Positions 7,936-52,985 are shown, counted from the stretch's first letter. The stretch is 64,000 bases of DNA from Guillardia theta CCMP2712 (GCF_000315625.1 NW_005434618.1:83038-147037); one strand, 5' to 3'. The notes: a model not told the origin generated them from the sequence alone. Made by a program: numbers and translations.

Positions 7936-10773
7936 TGGCAGGCAGCAGAATGCCATGGCGGGAAGCAGCGGCGACGGCGGGGGCGATGGCGATGATGGTG
8001 TTCATGGTGATGAGTGTAAGGGAGGGGGACAGGGTTGTGCAGCTCCTCGAAGGCAGGGGCTTGCGTGGTGAAGACCTGAAGCTTGCCAGACTGATACGGG
8101 AGTCCCGAAAGTTGGGGGTGACTGGAATCCCGAGCTTTCCTCCTGGCGCAAGAAGCACGAAGCTGGATATGGACTACGGCAACGATGAGCTCCCTATCCC
8201 CACCCTTGAGCCAGGGTCATCTACTCCTAACCTCCCTTTTCCAAGTCCCTCGAACGCATGGCAAAGGAGGAGGAGGAGTTTGATCTCGAACATGCTTACC
8301 ATGGACTACGGCGACGACGAGCTTCCTATCCCCACCCTTGAGCCAGGGTCATCTACTCCTAACCTTCCTTTTCCAAGTCCCTCTAACGCATGGCAGAGGA
8401 GGAGGAGGAGTTTGATCTCGAACATGCTTACCATGGACTACGGCGACGACGAGCTTCCTATCCCCAATCTTGAGCCAGGGTCATCTACTCCCAACATTCC
8501 GTTCCCTCCAGGCTCGGGCGTGGCTGACAAGGCAGGGCGCATGCAGTCTTTGGCACAGGAGGTGGACAATTCCGGCGAGGCACTCGACAGGGCAGGGGTG
8601 AAGGTCGGAGCAGACCTCAGCTCTGTCAACTCGCACGAAGATGATCGATATGTAGGAGCACAACATGTCGCTCCTTCTGTTGCGTTCAAGGGGAAGCTCA
8701 AGAAGACACAGTCTCTGTATGCTCCTGCATGGTCACCGGACTACTTGGAGCCATACCGTCATCCTTCTTCAGAGCAGAGTGCATGGCAGTGGATGAGTAA
8801 GGCAAAGAAACAGCACAAGAACGACCTTGCAGTCGAGGACAAGGAGGCTGCTGATGCTCAAAAGTCTCTGGATGAGATTGTGAGTGACGTTTGGAACAAG
8901 AAGATTGAAGGCCAGGGCATCGTGGGTGCGCAAACGAAGGCCAAACATGAGAAAGCTGCGGCAACAGTCCCCGAAACCAGCAAGTCAGTGGCAACCAAAG
9001 AGCTGGGAAAGCCAGTCGCTGCAGCACAGAAAGTTGCTCAGGCCACGGGGTCTGCCAGCAATTCTGTGAACCCTCGATCCCACGCAGCCTCTGGCAGACC
9101 TGAGCGAACGCAGAAGCTTGTTTCTTCCTCCGTTCCCACCAAGCAGTTTGCATCAAGTGGCAAGAAGGGAGCTGCCCAGGAGACATCTGACAAGCCTCAG
9201 ATGGAGTTAGAGAAGCTCGAGCTTGCGGAAGACATCCTTCATCACAAGACTCAAGCCAAGGCCAACAACGTCCTCCATGCGTCTGCGGTTGCGAAGCCTG
9301 ACGTGGCCGCCTCAGTAACCAAGGGCGAGCATCAAGTCTCGTCGGCGAAGAAGGTGAAGCATGGCTCTCTTGCGCTGCCAGCCGTTAACGATGACTGTCC
9401 TCTGCAGGAGTCGCACCAGCAAGCGCTGTTCGCCCATGGCTTCGGCACCACCAACCGCTTCCAGGCTCAACCGTTGAGCGCGTCCAAGAATCAAGATCGC
9501 CACGTGTACGGCTCTGACGCAGAGGCGGGTGACGTGGGCCATCCCACGAGCTTCGACTCTATTCCCCTCGCTTCCCCTTCCACCTTCATGTCTCGAGTGG
9601 CGGCGTATGAGCCTTCGGGAGTGAGTTCGGAAGAGCGCGTCCGTTTGGATCGCGAAGTTTACCGTGGGCAGGTAGACAGCAGCAGAGGCGATACATCGAC
9701 CTGGACTGACGCCTTCCCAGGTGCTGGCAGCATGGCGCAAGTACGAGCACGGACTCCAGCAGTGCATGGAGGCCGAGTCGACGATCGACCCGACCCTCAA
9801 GGACTACAGCTGCAAGGACGTTTCCAAGGGCTTCAAGTACCTCAGGGACTGCATGCAGAACCACAACTTCGGCCTACAGGACGTGGGAGGAGTCAAGCTC
9901 AAGTTCGTCGGTGACGAGAAGGCCTGGAGTGCCCTGCCGAAGCTCGTGCAGTACACCTACACGCTTCCTACGAAAGACTACGAGAAGGTCTACAACGTTC
10001 TCAGTCAGAGCGCCATCTTCGGCACCCTGTGGAACATGGAGAGACTCCATGCTCGCTGCGCGGCCACCGGCAGCACGGAGGCTCCTGGGCCGAGCCGAGC
10101 AGCGGTGATCAGCTCGATCGACAGGGACGTGAGGGGATACGACGAGGCCATGCGGAGGCTGATGCCGGGGACGCCGACGCAGCAGAGAGGGTACGACATC
10201 ATGCACAACGGATACAACGGCATGGTGTGGCATTACCCGGGGGTGGCTCGAGGGGTTTCGAGGGGTTACTGGAAGATTCCCAGCTCGTCGAGAGAGGTGG
10301 CTCCCTCCGCCTCCAGAGCCTCCCTCCCCTACTGGCGGGAGGTAGCTGGAAACCAGCCCACTCTCGGAGGGCTCCGCAGAGTCCAGCCGCGCGCGAGGCT
10401 CAACCCGGACACAGCTGGGCCTGCTGCCTTCCCGACGCGAGTGAATGGGAAGCGAGTGCACCCAGCGAACCCTCGGCCATGGCAGGCGAGCAAGGGAGCG
10501 CCGGACCCCTGGACAGGCTACTACTGGACCGGGCCCGGGAAGTTTGACATCGTGCCGGAGAGTCACCCGGTGACGCAGGCGATCTCAGGGTACAACTACC
10601 CGACCACCGCAAAGCCAGCTGCCGGCCTGCTGTGCGTGGAAGACGTGGAGTGCCCGCAGATGAGCGTGTGCTCGAGTGCTGGGTTCTGCCGAGCGTGGGG
10701 GGGAGACGACGTATGGCACGTCCCTGCTCAGCACGGCCTATGGCCCGCAAACTCCAGCCCTGACTGGTTCTAG
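7936..10773 (+). CDS. Signal-anchored/secreted protein with 44-aa tandem repeats and a C-terminal 4-Cys module (putative peptide precursor)
   Basis: ATG 7936 followed by hydrophobic AAATAGAMAMMVFMVMSV. A 49-nt intron at 9672-9720 (gtagac..ctgac..ttcccag) joins ORFs 7701-9914 and 9721-10773 in frame (RGQ|VLAAWRKY). C-terminus contains CVEDVECPQMSVCSSAGFC. Confidence 0.8.
8169..8505 (+). repeat. 132-bp coding tandem repeat, about 2.5 copies
   Basis: Units start at 8169, 8301 and 8433 and encode MDYG(N/D)DELPIPTLEPGSSTPNLPFPSPSNAWQRRRRSLISNMLT. Confidence 0.97.
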
Positions 10774-47724: not shown

Positions 47725-50700
47725 TTACTCGCACCGCGAGTTTCTCCAGTTCACGTATCTCTTGTGCCCGTCCGTCGATTTGAGAGCCGCAAACTCCTCC
47801 AGCAGGAGCTGCAGCTCGCAGATGTGCCCAGCTACTCCCCAGCCCTTCGCCCCCTCGTGGATCACCCGCAAGTTCAGCCCCACGTCTCGGTATCCCCCAG
47901 ACGACGACGCGTTGTAGCTGGGGTCAAGCCGGTTCTTGATCCTCACCACGTCCACCTCTGGGTCGTTGATGATCAGGTCGACGCAGGCGCAGAGCTGGTG
48001 CACGTCCAGGAAGATGATCGTCTGCCGTAGCACGTCGGTGAGCTTGGCAATTCTCCCGAAGTAAGACCTGACCAGCTTCTCGATCGCTCGGTTGGCGTTC
48101 TTGATCGACGCCCACTTGACCTCGAGTCTGTTTGCTTCATCCTCAACGCACTCTCGCCATCGCACAAGCCTCCCATCTCTCCCAAGGAAGTAGCCGTCGC
48201 TTGCCTCTGCCCATGCCTGCACCTTGCTCAAGAACATGGGCTCCAGCAGGATCGCTTGAGCATAAAGCTGGTCGAGCGACACGATCTCCCTTTCCTGACT
48301 TTTGCCGTTCTTCTTTGAAAGCTTCAGGTACGTCTTTGAGAAGCTGTTGTCCTTCTGACTCTTGAGCATGCTTGCAAGTGGGTCTAGAATAGTCGATTCC
48401 AATGCACATGAGGCATCGAAGACTTTCAACTGCAGAGCTTGCTTGGGCCTCACGCGCTCGCAGATGAGCTTGAGCGACCTCAGCACCTCACCGGCACCAT
48501 CCCGAGAAAAGATGTTCAACCAACATTGATTGTACTTTTTCATATCTCCACTGATCTGCCATCGAGACTTGAAGACGATGAATTGTCTGTGCAACGTAAA
48601 CAAGATCACCAGCCCCAGCAACCCAACGCTGCTCATTGCGATGTCCCACCACATAATCTGAGAAAAGTCCAACCTATATTGAGCAGCAGCAGGAAGAAAC
48701 GACGTGATCACGCTGTAAACAAGTAATCCCTTGATCATGTAACGCTCTTGAAACTGAAGGATCAGCCCCATCGAAAGGTCCATGACCGACCACACTAGGT
48801 AGTATGCCTGCCTGTTTTCCTCGGGTGACATTGCCAAGAAGAATTCGATGAGTCCTACCACATGGAAAGCAGACGCAAACACGGTCTTGGCTGCATGAAT
48901 CTTCTTCAAGCGCGCGAGGATCGCGGATCCAGGACAGCCAAAGACCTGCAGCACGGCCAGTAAGAAGTTGCACGTGACGCGCCATGTGAAACGGAGGTCC
49001 ACAAGAAGAGACTCATCGATGCGAGGAGAGAAGTCTGCCCGGCAGAAAGGAAGACCAAGACCATCTTGACAACTCTCGACCGTAAAGAGCGGCTTCCATC
49101 CCTCTTTTGCTCTCGTTGGGTCGTCAATCTTCCCGTCGGAGGTGTAGTCGCATGAGAGCCTCGAGGACTTAAGATAAGACTTCAGGTGTGGCGTCAGCGT
49201 AAACTTGACGCCATTGACAAACGTGTTCGGAGGAAATGAAAAGAAGATGTTGCTTCCAGCCACTTTGCTTGAGGTCCACATGTACTCCCGACATGTATCC
49301 TTTACCGCAGCCAAGTCCTGGATCGCCACGTCAGCATCAGCCCAAGCAGAGGCGTTGGAGTAGCCTTCGAATCCACACTTCAAGTGCCTCAGATAAACCG
49401 CTCGGCCTTGAAACACTGAAACATAATTGAAATTGTTCATGTAGAGATAGAAAAGCACGCCCCCCACGAGCAGCAGCAGAACTTGGAACGACGTCTTGTG
49501 GAGCACGTTCTTGAGCGGATGCGACGAGTACAGCACGCTAGTCGTGTCTGCTTTCGACACGCCATACCCAGACGACGACAGATACTTGTCCAGGATGTTG
49601 CCGGGATACATGCTCTTGTAGATCAACAGCGCAATGTCCGATCTCTCCTGTGCTAGCGACTTTGAGAAGCCTATCGAGCTGGACATGTGCGTTGGCAGCA
49701 GAGTTTCCGCAGCCCCGGACGACCCAGACGATCGCCTCTTCCTCATGATGTCCCTACCATCCTTCTTCTCTGTATCCGATCTTGTCCACCACTCCGACGA
49801 TCTTCTGAAGCGAAGCACGTGCTTCATCGACACATAGAGCGCATGACCCTTGCTGTCAACGAGCACATGCAGCAACCGCACCGCAAGCCGAAGCTCGCAG
49901 ATGTGCCCAGCTACTCCCCAGCCCTTCGCCCCCTCGTGGATCACCCGCAAGTTCAGCCCCACGTCTCGGTATCCCCCAGACGACGACGCGTTGTAGCTGG
50001 GGTCAAGCCGGTTCTTGATCCTCACCACTTCCACCTCTGGGTCGTTGATGATCAGGTCGACGCAGGCGCAGAGCTGATGCACGTCCAGGAAGATGATCGT
50101 CTGCCGCACAATATCTGTCAGAATGGACGTGTCCCCCCCGCCCAGCAGCAGGATCTTCTCGATCGCTCGGTTGGCGTTCTTGATCGACGCCCACTTGATC
50201 CGAGGCGCACACGAGATGTCATTCTTGAAGTCTCGCCATCGGATGTAGTGCTTCCTCTGCCCCGAAGGCGTGCTCATCAGGAAGTAGCCGTCGCTTGCCT
50301 CTGCCCATGCCTGCACCTTGCTTAAGAACATGGGCTGGAGCAGCACCGCCTGAGCGTACAGCTGGTCGAGATCCTTCTCCTGAAGCTCCCTGGCAAACTT
50401 AACAATCATGCTCGGCTCCGACGACACGGGCAGCAACGATGAAGATGAAAGCAGAGACTGCCTTCTCAACCACGTGAGCGAGGCTACTTCTCCTGTTCCT
50501 CCTCTACCCTGAATTGCCTTCGACCGCAGCATTGCTTGCGAAACAACTTCTTTCAGCTGCTGTATCCCTTCAAGATCTCTCAGCTGCCTCCATGCCTCCT
50601 CAAACCGCTCCTGCATCTCTCTCACCCTGCACAAGGATCTTTTCCTGATGAATTCGCGCATCCCTAGCGACGCTCCCGATAGAATCAAGATCGGCAGAAT

Positions 50701-51621
50701 CTTGTACGGCAACGAGTTGTCCACCCATGCACTAACAAACTCAATGAGCGATCCCACCATTACAAGCTCAATCGCATAAGCTTCCCATCGGATCAGAGGC
50801 AAGGGGAACACAAGCATATCCTGCAAACACACATTTTTGTCAATCTCTCGTCTCCTTTTTTCGCCTTCGTTCCTCACCGTCAATGTCGAGATCAAGAAAA
50901 CGTGCGACGACATCCCCATCACCGACTTCCTCTTGCCGCTGTGCACCATCTCTGCGAATACACACAGGCTGGCCGTTGCATGAATTAATCCGCCGATTAT
51001 GATGATCTACAGGCGAAGTCAAACATCCTCGGTCCCGCCCTACACCTCTCTTCATCTCACCTGCTTTGCTAGCCTCGTACTCACCAGGCTCAGCACACTT
51101 ACTGCCATGGCTACGAGACCCACCCAGCAGTTTGCGAACAGCTCTAAGAACGACTCCCATCCACATCCACGCTTTTCGATCTCCTTCATGTCGGTCATTG
51201 AGAACTGCCGAAACCTCTCCTCCATCAAGTATGCATAGTAACCCGGCCGGTGCACTTCTTTCACTTTGAACGCAACAGTCAAGATCCATGCGAAGCCCCC
51301 AACGAAGAGCAAGCACTGAAAGCCCATGAGGGACAACGCAGCTGAGATCGGGTCCTTGGAGAAGAGTATGAGAGAGGGTCGCTTCTGAAAGGTGACCCAC
51401 TTCTCCAGGCATCGCTGCATGTAGTCGCCAGGATGCTGGGTGTACATCCGGACGAAGCAAGAAGCATACTCTTCTTGCTCATATAGCCGGCCACTTGAAT
51501 CGTACATTGGAATGTTCTGTACGGAAGAGTCTAACTGTGTGGAAACTGTTATTTCCATGTCATGGTTGCTGCATGAGCTACGAGCAGAGTTGTTTGAATC
51601 CATTGTTTTGTGCAATGTCAT
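47725..51621 (-). CDS. Polytopic membrane protein with two RelA/SpoT-like nucleotidyltransferase (synthetase) domains
   Basis: ORFs 51052-51621 and 47725-50949 are joined by a short intron (~51010-51060), with a probable in-frame intron at ~50822-50879. Two hydrophobic blocks are each followed by WASIKNANRAIEK..TD(I/V)(V/L)RQTIIF..RIKNRLD..GGYRDV.LN..CEL(R/Q)L..GH..Y. Confidence 0.85.
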
Positions 51622-51908
51622 GCGCTTATAAGGAAGATTCTGTTGCCCAACTTTTCATGGTTGTCAGTCTTATCCCTAACCTCCACACTGCGTCGCAACT
51701 CCCTCTCCTCCCTCCTCCCTCGTCTATCCACTCGCCTCTCCACGGGCTCCATGTTTTGCAATGGCACTTTCCCCAAACATACTTCCCCACGAGCTGTTGT
51801 CACCCCATGCAAGGCAGTCATAATGAGGGGTACTCGGAATTCGTGACGATGACTCTTTTTTACAAGGACCAATATAGAGGGAGGTCACCTGGGTGTTGAC
51901 AACTCTGA

Positions 51909-52347
51909 GGAGCGTTTCACGCGTGGCCCAGAGGTCCAGATTCCCAGATCCCGTGGTACTAATTTTACTCAATAAATTTGAAATAATCTGGACCAATGGC
52001 ATAAAAGAGAATTTTATTCCCAAAGGTCCAGTTTTTGAACCGTTGTGGTCGAGTTTGTCAGCAGGGCAGTTGAACCCCCCCAGGGGCCCACCGATAGAAT
52101 CAGGGGGTGGGGTACTTACCGGACCGTAAATGTGCCTAGCCCAAGCTCCATTCTATGCCGCAATACACATGATGGTATTCAGAAAATATCTAACCCTTCC
52201 TATACCACCCAATGCAAACGACGGGCTCGGGCGGGAAAAGACCGTGACACGATCGTGACAATTTCACATTTAAAAATATGTATATTTGAAATATATTTCA
52301 AACAGGTTCTGGGAATCTGGACCTCTGGGCCACGCGTGAAACGCTCC
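51909..52347. mobile_element. MITE (PIF/Harbinger-Tourist-like), 439 bp, perfect 40-bp TIRs, TGA target-site duplication
   Basis: 51909-51948 GGAGCGTTTCACGCGTGGCCCAGAGGTCCAGATTCCCAGA is the exact reverse complement of 52308-52347; TGA at 51906-51908 and 52348-52350; AT-rich non-coding interior. Confidence 0.88.
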
Positions 52348-52985
52348 TGATAATAGAAGATCAGACTTTACTCTAAAGCCTGAGTCCGCCTGCAACCGTT
52401 GATCGGACTGTCATGTGACCATAACCGGCGTACGGTCCGATCGAGTGTTTCAGTGTAGAGCACCGCGCAGTCCATCAGTCCCTATCGCCGGGATTCAATC
52501 ATGGCCGGGCATTCGGATTGCCACCGGTGACTCAGCTCACTCCCTCCCTAGTACCGTTTTACCATCCCGCCGGGCCTCACGTGGCAAACTTTGCCCGGCC
52601 CAGCCCGGCCTGACTGTTGAACTCTTGAAGGGACCGGGGACTCACCGTGTCAGCCGGGAGCCCGTGGCCCCACGGTGACAGGCGGCCGCGCGGCCCGGCG
52701 GCCCCGATGACTCCAACTCACTGTGCTGTGAAGCCAAAGCCAGCCGCCAGGCTGTCACTGAGTCAGACGGTCTGGCAGGGCCCGGGGGCCGCGCCTTTTC
52801 TCGCCGGAGCCTGAATCTGAGAGAGGCCCTGTCATCAATCTGTCATCCGTCAATCAAGTGACTTTTTTTTTCAATTTTCAAACTTCCCGCATGGCCATGC
52901 CGGCACCGACAATCGGAGCTTCTTGTCTAGCTAGTGGGTCAGCCAGCATGCATGCATGCAGTAGATGCGGCATTGAGACAGAGAG

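Follow-up and report, generated by a model that had tools for sequence, protein, structure and literature searches.

The 64-kb stretch of Guillardia theta CCMP2712 DNA analysed here (the window) carries on its minus strand, at positions 47725–51621, the gene GUITHDRAFT_112018. The gene is annotated as encoding a 1,195-aa "hypothetical protein", which is 100% identical to the protein of the frame originally flagged in this DNA. We put at about 0.6 the probability that GUITHDRAFT_112018 is genuine and intact, that it encodes a polytopic membrane protein consisting of two repeats of one unit, and that this protein is a receptor-type pyrophosphokinase with two synthetase (SYN) units, one of about 50 paralogues in G. 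theta and a member of a family whose named members all come from cryptophytes. The integrity of the gene, the fold of the domain, the conservation of its motifs, the number of helices, the size of the family and the asymmetry of its two SYN domains (D1 and D2) come directly from the analysis. The layout put forward in the original prediction, six transmembrane (TM) helices, a SYN domain, six more helices and a second SYN domain that ends the protein, was recovered by hydropathy analysis, with the domain copies at 49807–50373 (D1) and 47728–48279 (D2), within about 50 bases of where they had first been placed.

Fold of the synthetase domain

An exhaustive HMMER search with D2 retrieved 1,887 cluster representatives at E <= 1e-3 (clusters at 50% identity, public data), 792 of them at E <= 1e-10. 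The AlphaFold (AF2) model of D2 built from an alignment of 129 family domains reached a pLDDT of 94.4 and a pTM of 0.90; a single-sequence AlphaFold model of the same domain (pLDDT 40.7) was discarded. The D2 model was compared, via a wide search independent of Foldseek, with 48,161 PDB representative chains, and the top 11 were all synthetases of the RelA/SpoT (RSH) family, with Z scores of 8.1–13.7. These are RelP (6fgk, Z 13.7, and 6ewz, Z 12.7), RelQ (5dec, Z 12.5), CapRel (7ztb, Z 11.8), Rel (8acu, Z 11.7), Tas1 (6ox6, Z 11.5, 24% identity over 144 residues), the exported small alarmone synthetase (SAS) of S. albidoflavus, SaEAS (8vx3, Z 11.5, 21% identity), and SpoT 7qps, Rel 6yxa, RelA 5l3p and SpoT 7qpr (Z 10.2–8.1). 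The next fold, RsfS/iojap (2o5a), followed at Z 7.2. With Foldseek, all 50 matches shown for the D2 model were likewise RSH-family chains, including 26 at E <= 1e-3, and the top match had an E value of 2e-5 and a probability of 1.00.

A profile of the 129 family domains, run against all PDB sequences at E <= 10, gave two matches only, Tas1 (E 3e-5) and RelP/YwaC (E 0.006), both of which align motif on motif with the Syn motifs. Pfam and NCBIfam scans of the whole protein found no match, and neither did a phmmer search of D2 against PDB sequences. Below threshold, the Pfam model matched most often was RelA_SpoT, in 6 of 21 family members. The original prediction had read the order of the motifs as Syn1 to Syn5 and had proposed the RelA/SpoT nucleotidyltransferase fold; the former is upheld by the profile alignments onto Tas1 and RelP, and the latter by Foldseek and the wide structure search. 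The assignment of the modelled domain to the RelA/SpoT synthetase fold, a nucleotidyltransferase-type arrangement in which helices flank a central mixed beta-sheet, is secure, and a chance resemblance of motifs was rejected on the fold and profile statistics. Within the RSH synthetases, the family forms a divergent branch that is Tas1-like and of the small alarmone synthetase type. Several of the paralogues, as well as a Hemiselmis homologue, already bear the automatic UniRef name "RelA/SpoT domain-containing protein", a fact that, together with the approximately 50 paralogues in the genome, had been missed in the earlier reading.

As had been proposed, the protein has neither an HD domain nor a leader. 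A Pfam scan of GUITHDRAFT_112018 found no HD_4, TGS or ACT domain, and the hydrophilic N-terminus shows no hydrophobic leader in its first 97 residues, the first helix starting at residue 98. Long plastid RSHs of plants and algae have an HD_4 hydrolase domain N-terminal to SYN, TGS/ACT or EF-hand parts C-terminal to it, and an organelle targeting leader. On these grounds (no HD domain and no leader) identity with a plastid RSH was ruled out. Identity with a class III cyclase was also ruled out, as no cyclase domain (PF00211) was found and the catalytic-type domains are of the RSH fold.

Unequal copies of the domain

The two SYN domains occupy the following positions:

49807–50373, minus strand: SYN domain D1, variant copy; Syn2 Asp at 50113–50115 and Syn4 Glu at 49894–49896 are kept
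47728–48279, minus strand: SYN domain D2, canonical copy, at the end of the protein; full signature, with Syn2 Asp at 48034–48036 and Syn4 Glu at 47815–47817

A whole-genome profile search found the same places (C56:132856–133422, which is window 49819–50385, and C56:130765–131337, which is window 47728–48300). In the numbering of the 194-aa D2 query, residues K70, K78, D92 (Syn2, metal-binding), R95, G139-Y140-R141 (G-loop), E165-x-Q167 (Syn4) and H182..Y185 (Syn5) are 90–100% conserved family-wide. Among the 129 family domains D92 is invariant, and E165, K70, K78, R95, G139 and R141 are each present in at least 90%; Y140 is present in 30 of 32 D2 copies. We take the Syn2 Asp and Syn4 Glu of the family to be equivalent to D264 and E323 of RelSeq, as the Tas1 and RelP profile alignments also indicate. 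The FaRel2 counterpart of the Syn2 Asp is D90 (PMC11782079).

A comparison of 32 tandem proteins from several lineages shows the 19-residue signature complete in D2 with hardly an exception, whereas D1 deviates from it at one to nine positions in 29 of the 32; the two domains are therefore not equivalent. The residues most often lost from D1 are R74, R127, Y140, N146, Q167 and H182; loss of D92 or E165 is rare. In D1 of GUITHDRAFT_112018, the Syn4 Gln is replaced by Arg, the 'RSY' helix that follows Syn1 is replaced, and the Syn5 region is altered. D2 is thus the canonical and probably the catalytic copy, and D1 a diverged variant.

At the DNA level, the two domains share blocks that are 91–100% identical (47807–48276 versus 49886–50370), broken by three diverged blocks: the helix after Syn1 ('RSY' in D2, nearly invariant in the family, versus 'LLG' in D1), the residues after the Syn4 Glu (E-L-Q versus E-L-R), and the Syn5 region. 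The identity stops exactly past the Syn4 Glu-Leu. This mosaic looks like the result of intragenic gene conversion with preservation of D1-specific segments, and it suggests that the differences between D1 and D2 are being maintained. In a maximum-likelihood tree, D1 and D2 sequences group within subfamilies rather than forming two global clades, and the D1 branches are consistently longer, a pattern that would fit concerted evolution or repeated duplication. A complex prediction for D1 with D2 scored 0.00, which counts neither for nor against their binding.

Gene model

The open frame of 1,074 codons at 47725–50949 (minus strand) is preceded by a 189-codon frame at 51052–51621. Mapping of the public model onto the DNA and comparison with paralogues led to the following revised model:

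47725–51621, minus strand: whole gene GUITHDRAFT_112018, three exons, about 1,261 aa; across its exons, the annotated protein (P0001) shows 100% identity
51621 (or ATG at 51507)–51061, 51006–50878 and 50820–47728, minus strand: the three exons
51007–51060, minus strand: intron 1, 54 nt, GTGAGA...CTGTAG, with in-frame stops inside
50821–50877, minus strand: intron 2, 57 nt, GTGAGG...TTGCAG
50455–50605, minus strand: stretch spliced or frame-shifted out by the public model; the read-through frame is kept in paralogues P0002 and P0003
47725–47727, minus strand: stop codon

Counted from the second ATG, the revised protein is 1,223 aa long. Both introns are short and have canonical ends (GTGAG..AG), and removal of intron 2 gives an unbroken fourth helix of the first membrane block, matching paralogue P0004. 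The read-through frame at 50455–50605 aligns well with P0002 and P0003 and carries a juxtamembrane 'F/Y..W..L' motif. Because of this conservation and of the motif located there, removal of the stretch in the public model is probably wrong. The stretch is most likely coding, and the public protein probably lacks about 28 aa and carries about 20 aa of wrong sequence.

The four sequencing runs that hold most of the stretch look like genomic DNA, since they are contiguous through introns and intergenic DNA. In two genomic DNA runs, the depth rises from about 5 to 16–54 at window positions 51898–52400, immediately upstream of the gene, and many loose ends occur there; a dispersed repeat probably adjoins the 5' end of the gene.

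Membrane architecture

Helices were called by Kyte-Doolittle hydropathy with a 19-residue window, which gave the following features:

50659–51330, minus strand: membrane block 1, six helices
51274–51330, 51082–51138, 50950–51006, 50791–50904 (spanning intron 2), 50722–50778 and 50659–50715, minus strand: the six helices of block 1
51139–51273, minus strand: short loop (45 aa) between helices 1 and 2 of block 1
50581–50610, minus strand: juxtamembrane motif of unit 1, equivalent to that of unit 2
48571–49494, minus strand: membrane block 2, six helices
49438–49494, minus strand: helix 1 of block 2
48982–49437, minus strand: 152-aa loop linking helices 1 and 2 of block 2, presumed outward-facing sensor domain, with five Cys and one N-x-S sequon
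48916–48972, 48829–48885, 48751–48807, 48682–48738 and 48571–48627, minus strand: helices 2–6 of block 2
48511–48549, minus strand: juxtamembrane motif D..Y..W..L of unit 2, directly after helix 6

After the sixth helix of each block there is a strongly basic stretch followed by the conserved D..Y..W..L helix. This juxtamembrane motif is the best-conserved feature of the membrane module, its Y and W being present in at least 90% of 20 relatives. Six helices, an even number, separate D1 from D2, so hydropathy places the two domains on the same face of the membrane; an arrangement on opposite faces, which would have spoken against the original prediction, was not borne out. Because of this even number and of the positive stretch after each sixth helix, both SYN domains most likely face the cytosol. 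The short loops of unit 2 obey the positive-inside rule if the long loop faces outward and the SYN domain is cytosolic, an arrangement that puts the Cys-rich loop on the opposite face.

The 152-aa loop is homologous to the loop of single-unit relatives, which show weak discoidin/CBM32-like signals. A profile of the membrane module (20 relatives) gave only chance-level matches against PDB, namely the accessory domain of a GH92 mannosidase (E 0.12) and the TM region of a nicotinic receptor (E 0.7). When the members of this set were scanned individually against Pfam, there was one match to F5_F8_type_C (E 0.033), and the ESM Atlas model of one relative (P0007) shows weak resemblances to a beta-sandwich and to a 6-TM bundle. 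We regard a discoidin/CBM32-like outward domain as a lead and not as an established fold.

Distribution of the family

A six-frame profile search of the G. theta assembly yielded 110 matches. At about 29 loci, two domains lie about 2.1 kb apart within one open frame of more than 1,000 aa, and at about 20 loci there is a single domain, for a total of about 50 paralogues; approximately 25 further matches are weaker. Among 166 relatives that were fetched, the SYN domain ends the protein in 161, most have 3–6 predicted helices upstream, and single-unit forms are common. Every relative with a source name comes from a cryptophyte (Guillardia, Hemiselmis, Rhodomonas or Cryptomonas); rows of the ESM Atlas mention ciliates and diatoms, and all the named proteins that were looked up are from cryptophytes. 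Cryptophyte transcripts with two units also exist: one from MMETSP (P0008) holds unit 1 and the start of unit 2 on a single transcript, and the two-unit forms found in run assemblies comprise 1,542 aa (P0005) and 1,744 aa (P0051).

Two canonical RSHs, on contigs C47 and C24, are also encoded in the G. theta genome; both have HD_4 and RelA_SpoT domains above the Pfam cut-offs. Genome-wide, HD_4 matches were confined to these two long RSHs, and no stand-alone HD_4 hydrolase was found.

A second, more distant G. theta subfamily is represented by L001 (C4:1071678–1071887), L002 (C71:208799–209101) and about 23 similar places. In the two that were looked at (L001 and L002), open frames of 800–1,080 aa encode several hydrophobic helices and, at the C-terminus, a SYN-like domain. 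This domain is more diverged, fits the family profile over Syn1–Syn2 only (E ~1e-16) and has no Pfam match; in L002 an insert of about 80 aa interrupts it.

Tara Oceans marine metagenome contigs of up to 59 kb (L003–L005) encode a 294-aa SYN product (P0019, at 8001–8885), which is present on 44 contigs. It is located just downstream of a 1,341-aa unannotated gene, and these gene-dense, eukaryote-like contigs also carry CAD-like and FKBP genes. P0019 and its 1,341-aa neighbour are probably one split gene of the same family from a marine picoeukaryote. In the ESM Atlas, D2-like structures (TM 0.68–0.75) are also seen fused to TPR repeats and to a phage Peptidase_S78_2 domain, so architectures of other kinds, possibly linked to conflict, may employ the Tas1-like SYN domain.

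Comparison with known systems

The best profile match, Tas1/Apk1 (the (p)ppApp synthetase toxin domain of a Pseudomonas aeruginosa type VI effector, 6ox6), has the same fold as D2 and shares with the family Syn1 'I-K-(3)-R-A-(2)-K' without the classical leading Arg, Syn2 'D-(2)-R-(2)-I', and a single domain with no HD hydrolase. However, Tas1 is a soluble, secreted bacterial toxin with an immunity protein, whereas the domain described here would form the cytosolic end of a eukaryotic 6-TM module, is duplicated in tandem and comes from a family of about 50 genes. The proximity is one of sequence and fold alone, and the context of secretion and immunity does not apply to a eukaryotic membrane protein.

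The best structural matches, RelP/SAS2 and RelQ/SAS1 of Firmicutes (6fgk, 6ewz and 5dec; Z 12.5–13.7 over about 150 residues), line up with D2 in the G-Y-R G-loop, the Syn4 Glu-x-Gln and the Syn5 His..Tyr. Identity to them is 13–15%, and these enzymes are soluble, allosteric homotetramers that make (pp)pGpp, whereas the G. theta protein is predicted to be membrane-anchored and has no Pfam-level match. The tRNA-pyrophosphorylating toxic SASs (toxSAS) CapRel (7ztb) and FaRel2 (8pu1 and 8pu4) have the same catalytic fold as D2. They show that the RSH fold can act on the adenosine of the tRNA CCA end and not on a free nucleotide (PMC11782079). In contrast to the G. theta protein, they carry a fused or separate antitoxin or a pseudo-zinc-finger, together with an N-terminal tRNA-recognition region; neither is evident here.

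SaEAS (8vx3), which also has a Tas1-like SYN fold, offers a precedent for an RSH that works away from the bacterial cytoplasm and accepts adenine and guanine nucleotides promiscuously (PMC12691689). Before the exported enzymes were described, all characterised RSHs acted in the bacterial cytoplasm (PMC12691689). The G. theta domain, preceded by a basic stretch and an even number of helices, is probably cytosolic, whereas SaEAS is a secreted, soluble protein with a signal peptide.

The original prediction had likened the protein to animal class III adenylyl cyclases, with their M1-C1-M2-C2 design. This likeness holds for the arrangement of six helices and a domain repeated twice, and for the inequality of the copies, one of which is degenerate at conserved positions. 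It does not extend to a shared fold or an interfacial site: the folds are unrelated, the cyclase site lies at the C1–C2 interface whereas the RSH site lies within one domain, and single-unit forms of the G. theta family are common.

Plastid RSHs (RSH1 and RSH4/CRSH) and the divRel[S] proteins belong to the same superfamily, but the G. theta family lacks HD domains, is apparently membrane-bound, occurs in tandem and is greatly expanded. A few unclassifiable divergent SASs ('divRel[S]') in fungi, dictyostelids and diatoms were listed by Atkinson et al. in 2011 (PMC3153485); the cryptophyte membrane SYN family is not mentioned there or in PMC6881373.

Proposed mechanism and alternative explanations

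In the model that we infer, which covers cytosolic orientation, catalytic activity, product and gating, each unit would consist of a short cytosolic lead-in, helix 1, an outward loop, helices 2–6, a juxtamembrane helix and a cytosolic SYN domain. The outward loop and the 6-TM module would probably gate the SYN domain in response to an external or membrane cue, via the conserved juxtamembrane helix. D2 most likely would move the beta-gamma pyrophosphate from ATP onto the 3'-OH of an acceptor, whereas D1 most likely would act in regulation or differ in specificity. A purine nucleotide would serve as the acceptor, with (p)ppApp or (p)ppGpp as the product; the 3' end of a tRNA is a less likely acceptor. 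The choice of acceptor is not readable from the sequence; the proximity to Tas1 and SaEAS allows for adenine or mixed A/G acceptors, and the toxSAS precedents allow for a tRNA acceptor (PMC11782079). A tentative elaboration of this model, which we consider possible rather than probable, is that of a cryptophyte family of cell-surface receptors with a cytosolic (p)ppApp/(p)ppGpp output, that is, a eukaryotic, non-plastid alarmone second messenger produced by a receptor-cyclase-like logic in which a canonical D2 is paired with a diverged, regulatory D1.

Several observations weigh against reading the protein as a receptor-type pyrophosphokinase. The match of GUITHDRAFT_112018 to the Pfam RelA_SpoT model (PF04607) is below threshold; among relatives, the best match has an E value of 0.007 (about 14 bits against a cut-off of 27). 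This miss reflects the sensitivity of that one model and not the fold; the canonical G. theta RSHs pass the threshold. Two features of classical (p)ppGpp synthetases, the Arg of the Syn1 'R-x-K' and the 'D-x-x-G-x-R' spacing, are missing; the pattern is Tas1-like ('IK...', 'D..R'), so that the chemistry could differ. The topology is a hydropathy-based prediction, and loops 1–2 and 3–4 of unit 1 are rich in K/R and fit the positive-inside rule poorly. With respect to expression, one raw RNA-seq run, of which 6% was read, contained no reads from GUITHDRAFT_112018, and the only other trace consists of two short contigs at 48512–48996 from a run of uncertain type. Finally, since no stand-alone HD_4 hydrolase was found, a cytosolic enzyme that would degrade the product is not evident.

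The main rival, which we consider unlikely, is that the paralogues are a large, fast-diversifying family of defence or cell-death effectors, in which toxic SAS-like domains with membrane sensors shut the cell down upon viral or other attack, either by draining ATP via (p)ppApp, in the manner of Tas1 and FaRel, or by pyrophosphorylating tRNA 3' ends, in the manner of CapRel and FaRel2. Among relatives of known structure, the one nearest in sequence, Tas1, is itself a toxin, and CapRel (Z 11.8) ranks high among the structural matches. The family has expanded within this lineage to about 50 paralogues, whose outward loops vary and which show tandem clustering and gene conversion, as is typical of gene families for immunity or recognition. 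The TPR-fused and phage-borne forms are among its structural relatives in the ESM Atlas, no dedicated small hydrolase was found in the G. theta genome, and adenine-specific SAS enzymes potently inhibit growth (PMC11782079). However, we saw no antitoxin or immunity partner and no autoinhibitory pseudo-zinc-finger of the CapRel type, the SYN domain being the end of the protein; an N-terminal tRNA-binding extension was not found, nor was one looked for; and a membrane tether would be an odd place for a tRNA-modifying enzyme.

It is improbable that the protein is a pseudoenzyme or nucleotide sensor whose SYN-fold domains bind a nucleotide or act as a scaffold without catalysis, the protein really being a channel or transporter with 6-TM modules that these domains regulate. 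Such a role would agree with the loss of several conserved residues from D1, with the sub-threshold Pfam match, and with the Atlas model of the P0007 membrane module, which is weakly similar to the small 6-TM channels AmiS/UreI (TM 0.60). The similarity to channels, however, is a weak match between models of middling confidence, and in D2 the metal-binding Asp, the catalytic Glu, the G-loop Tyr and all the basic residues are kept in about 30–32 of the 32 tandem proteins and across the 129 domains, which implies purifying selection on the active site.

That the gene is an artefact of annotation or assembly, either neighbouring single-unit genes joined by mistake or a collapsed or expanded repeat, is very improbable: both domains contain near-identical DNA blocks at which short-read contigs break (48119–48199 and 49935–50169), one short-read contig (run X4) joins 48122 to 50347, skipping 2,224 bases, and the sampled RNA-seq run held no reads from the gene, but an independent DNA contig covers 48199–49935 unbroken, from the D2 side through block 2 into D1, the frame is open over 1,074 codons, and the same tandem layout is seen at about 29 other loci of the genome and in proteins of other cryptophytes, including transcripts. 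The 48122–50347 join has only 24 letters on one of its sides and is out of step with the spacing of the repeats; rather than a deletion allele, it most likely reflects an assembly error induced by the repeat.

Implications

The stringent response of bacteria and plastids is built around RSH enzymes. To our knowledge, hardly any eukaryotic synthetases are known outside plastids, the exceptions being a few unclassified divergent SAS genes in the 2011 list (PMC3153485). Literature searches returned no paper on GUITHDRAFT_112018, on its paralogues or on any membrane-anchored or receptor-type RSH, in agreement with the earlier statement that no characterised protein is known to resemble it. The kind of enzyme is known, and its domain is recognised automatically in some of the paralogues; what is new is the architecture, a tandem, putative membrane-receptor form, and the clade. 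GUITHDRAFT_112018 combines the synthetase fold with a putative 6-TM sensor module in unequal tandem copies, and it represents about 50 genes in one alga and about 1,900 public sequence clusters. If the enzymes are active, they would constitute a new eukaryotic second-messenger pathway or, alternatively, a new eukaryotic defence effector related to bacterial toxSAS. For algal physiologists, the family is a candidate source of alarmones outside the plastid. GUITHDRAFT_112018 and its paralogues point to an unstudied system of receptor-type nucleotide signalling or defence in a eukaryote.

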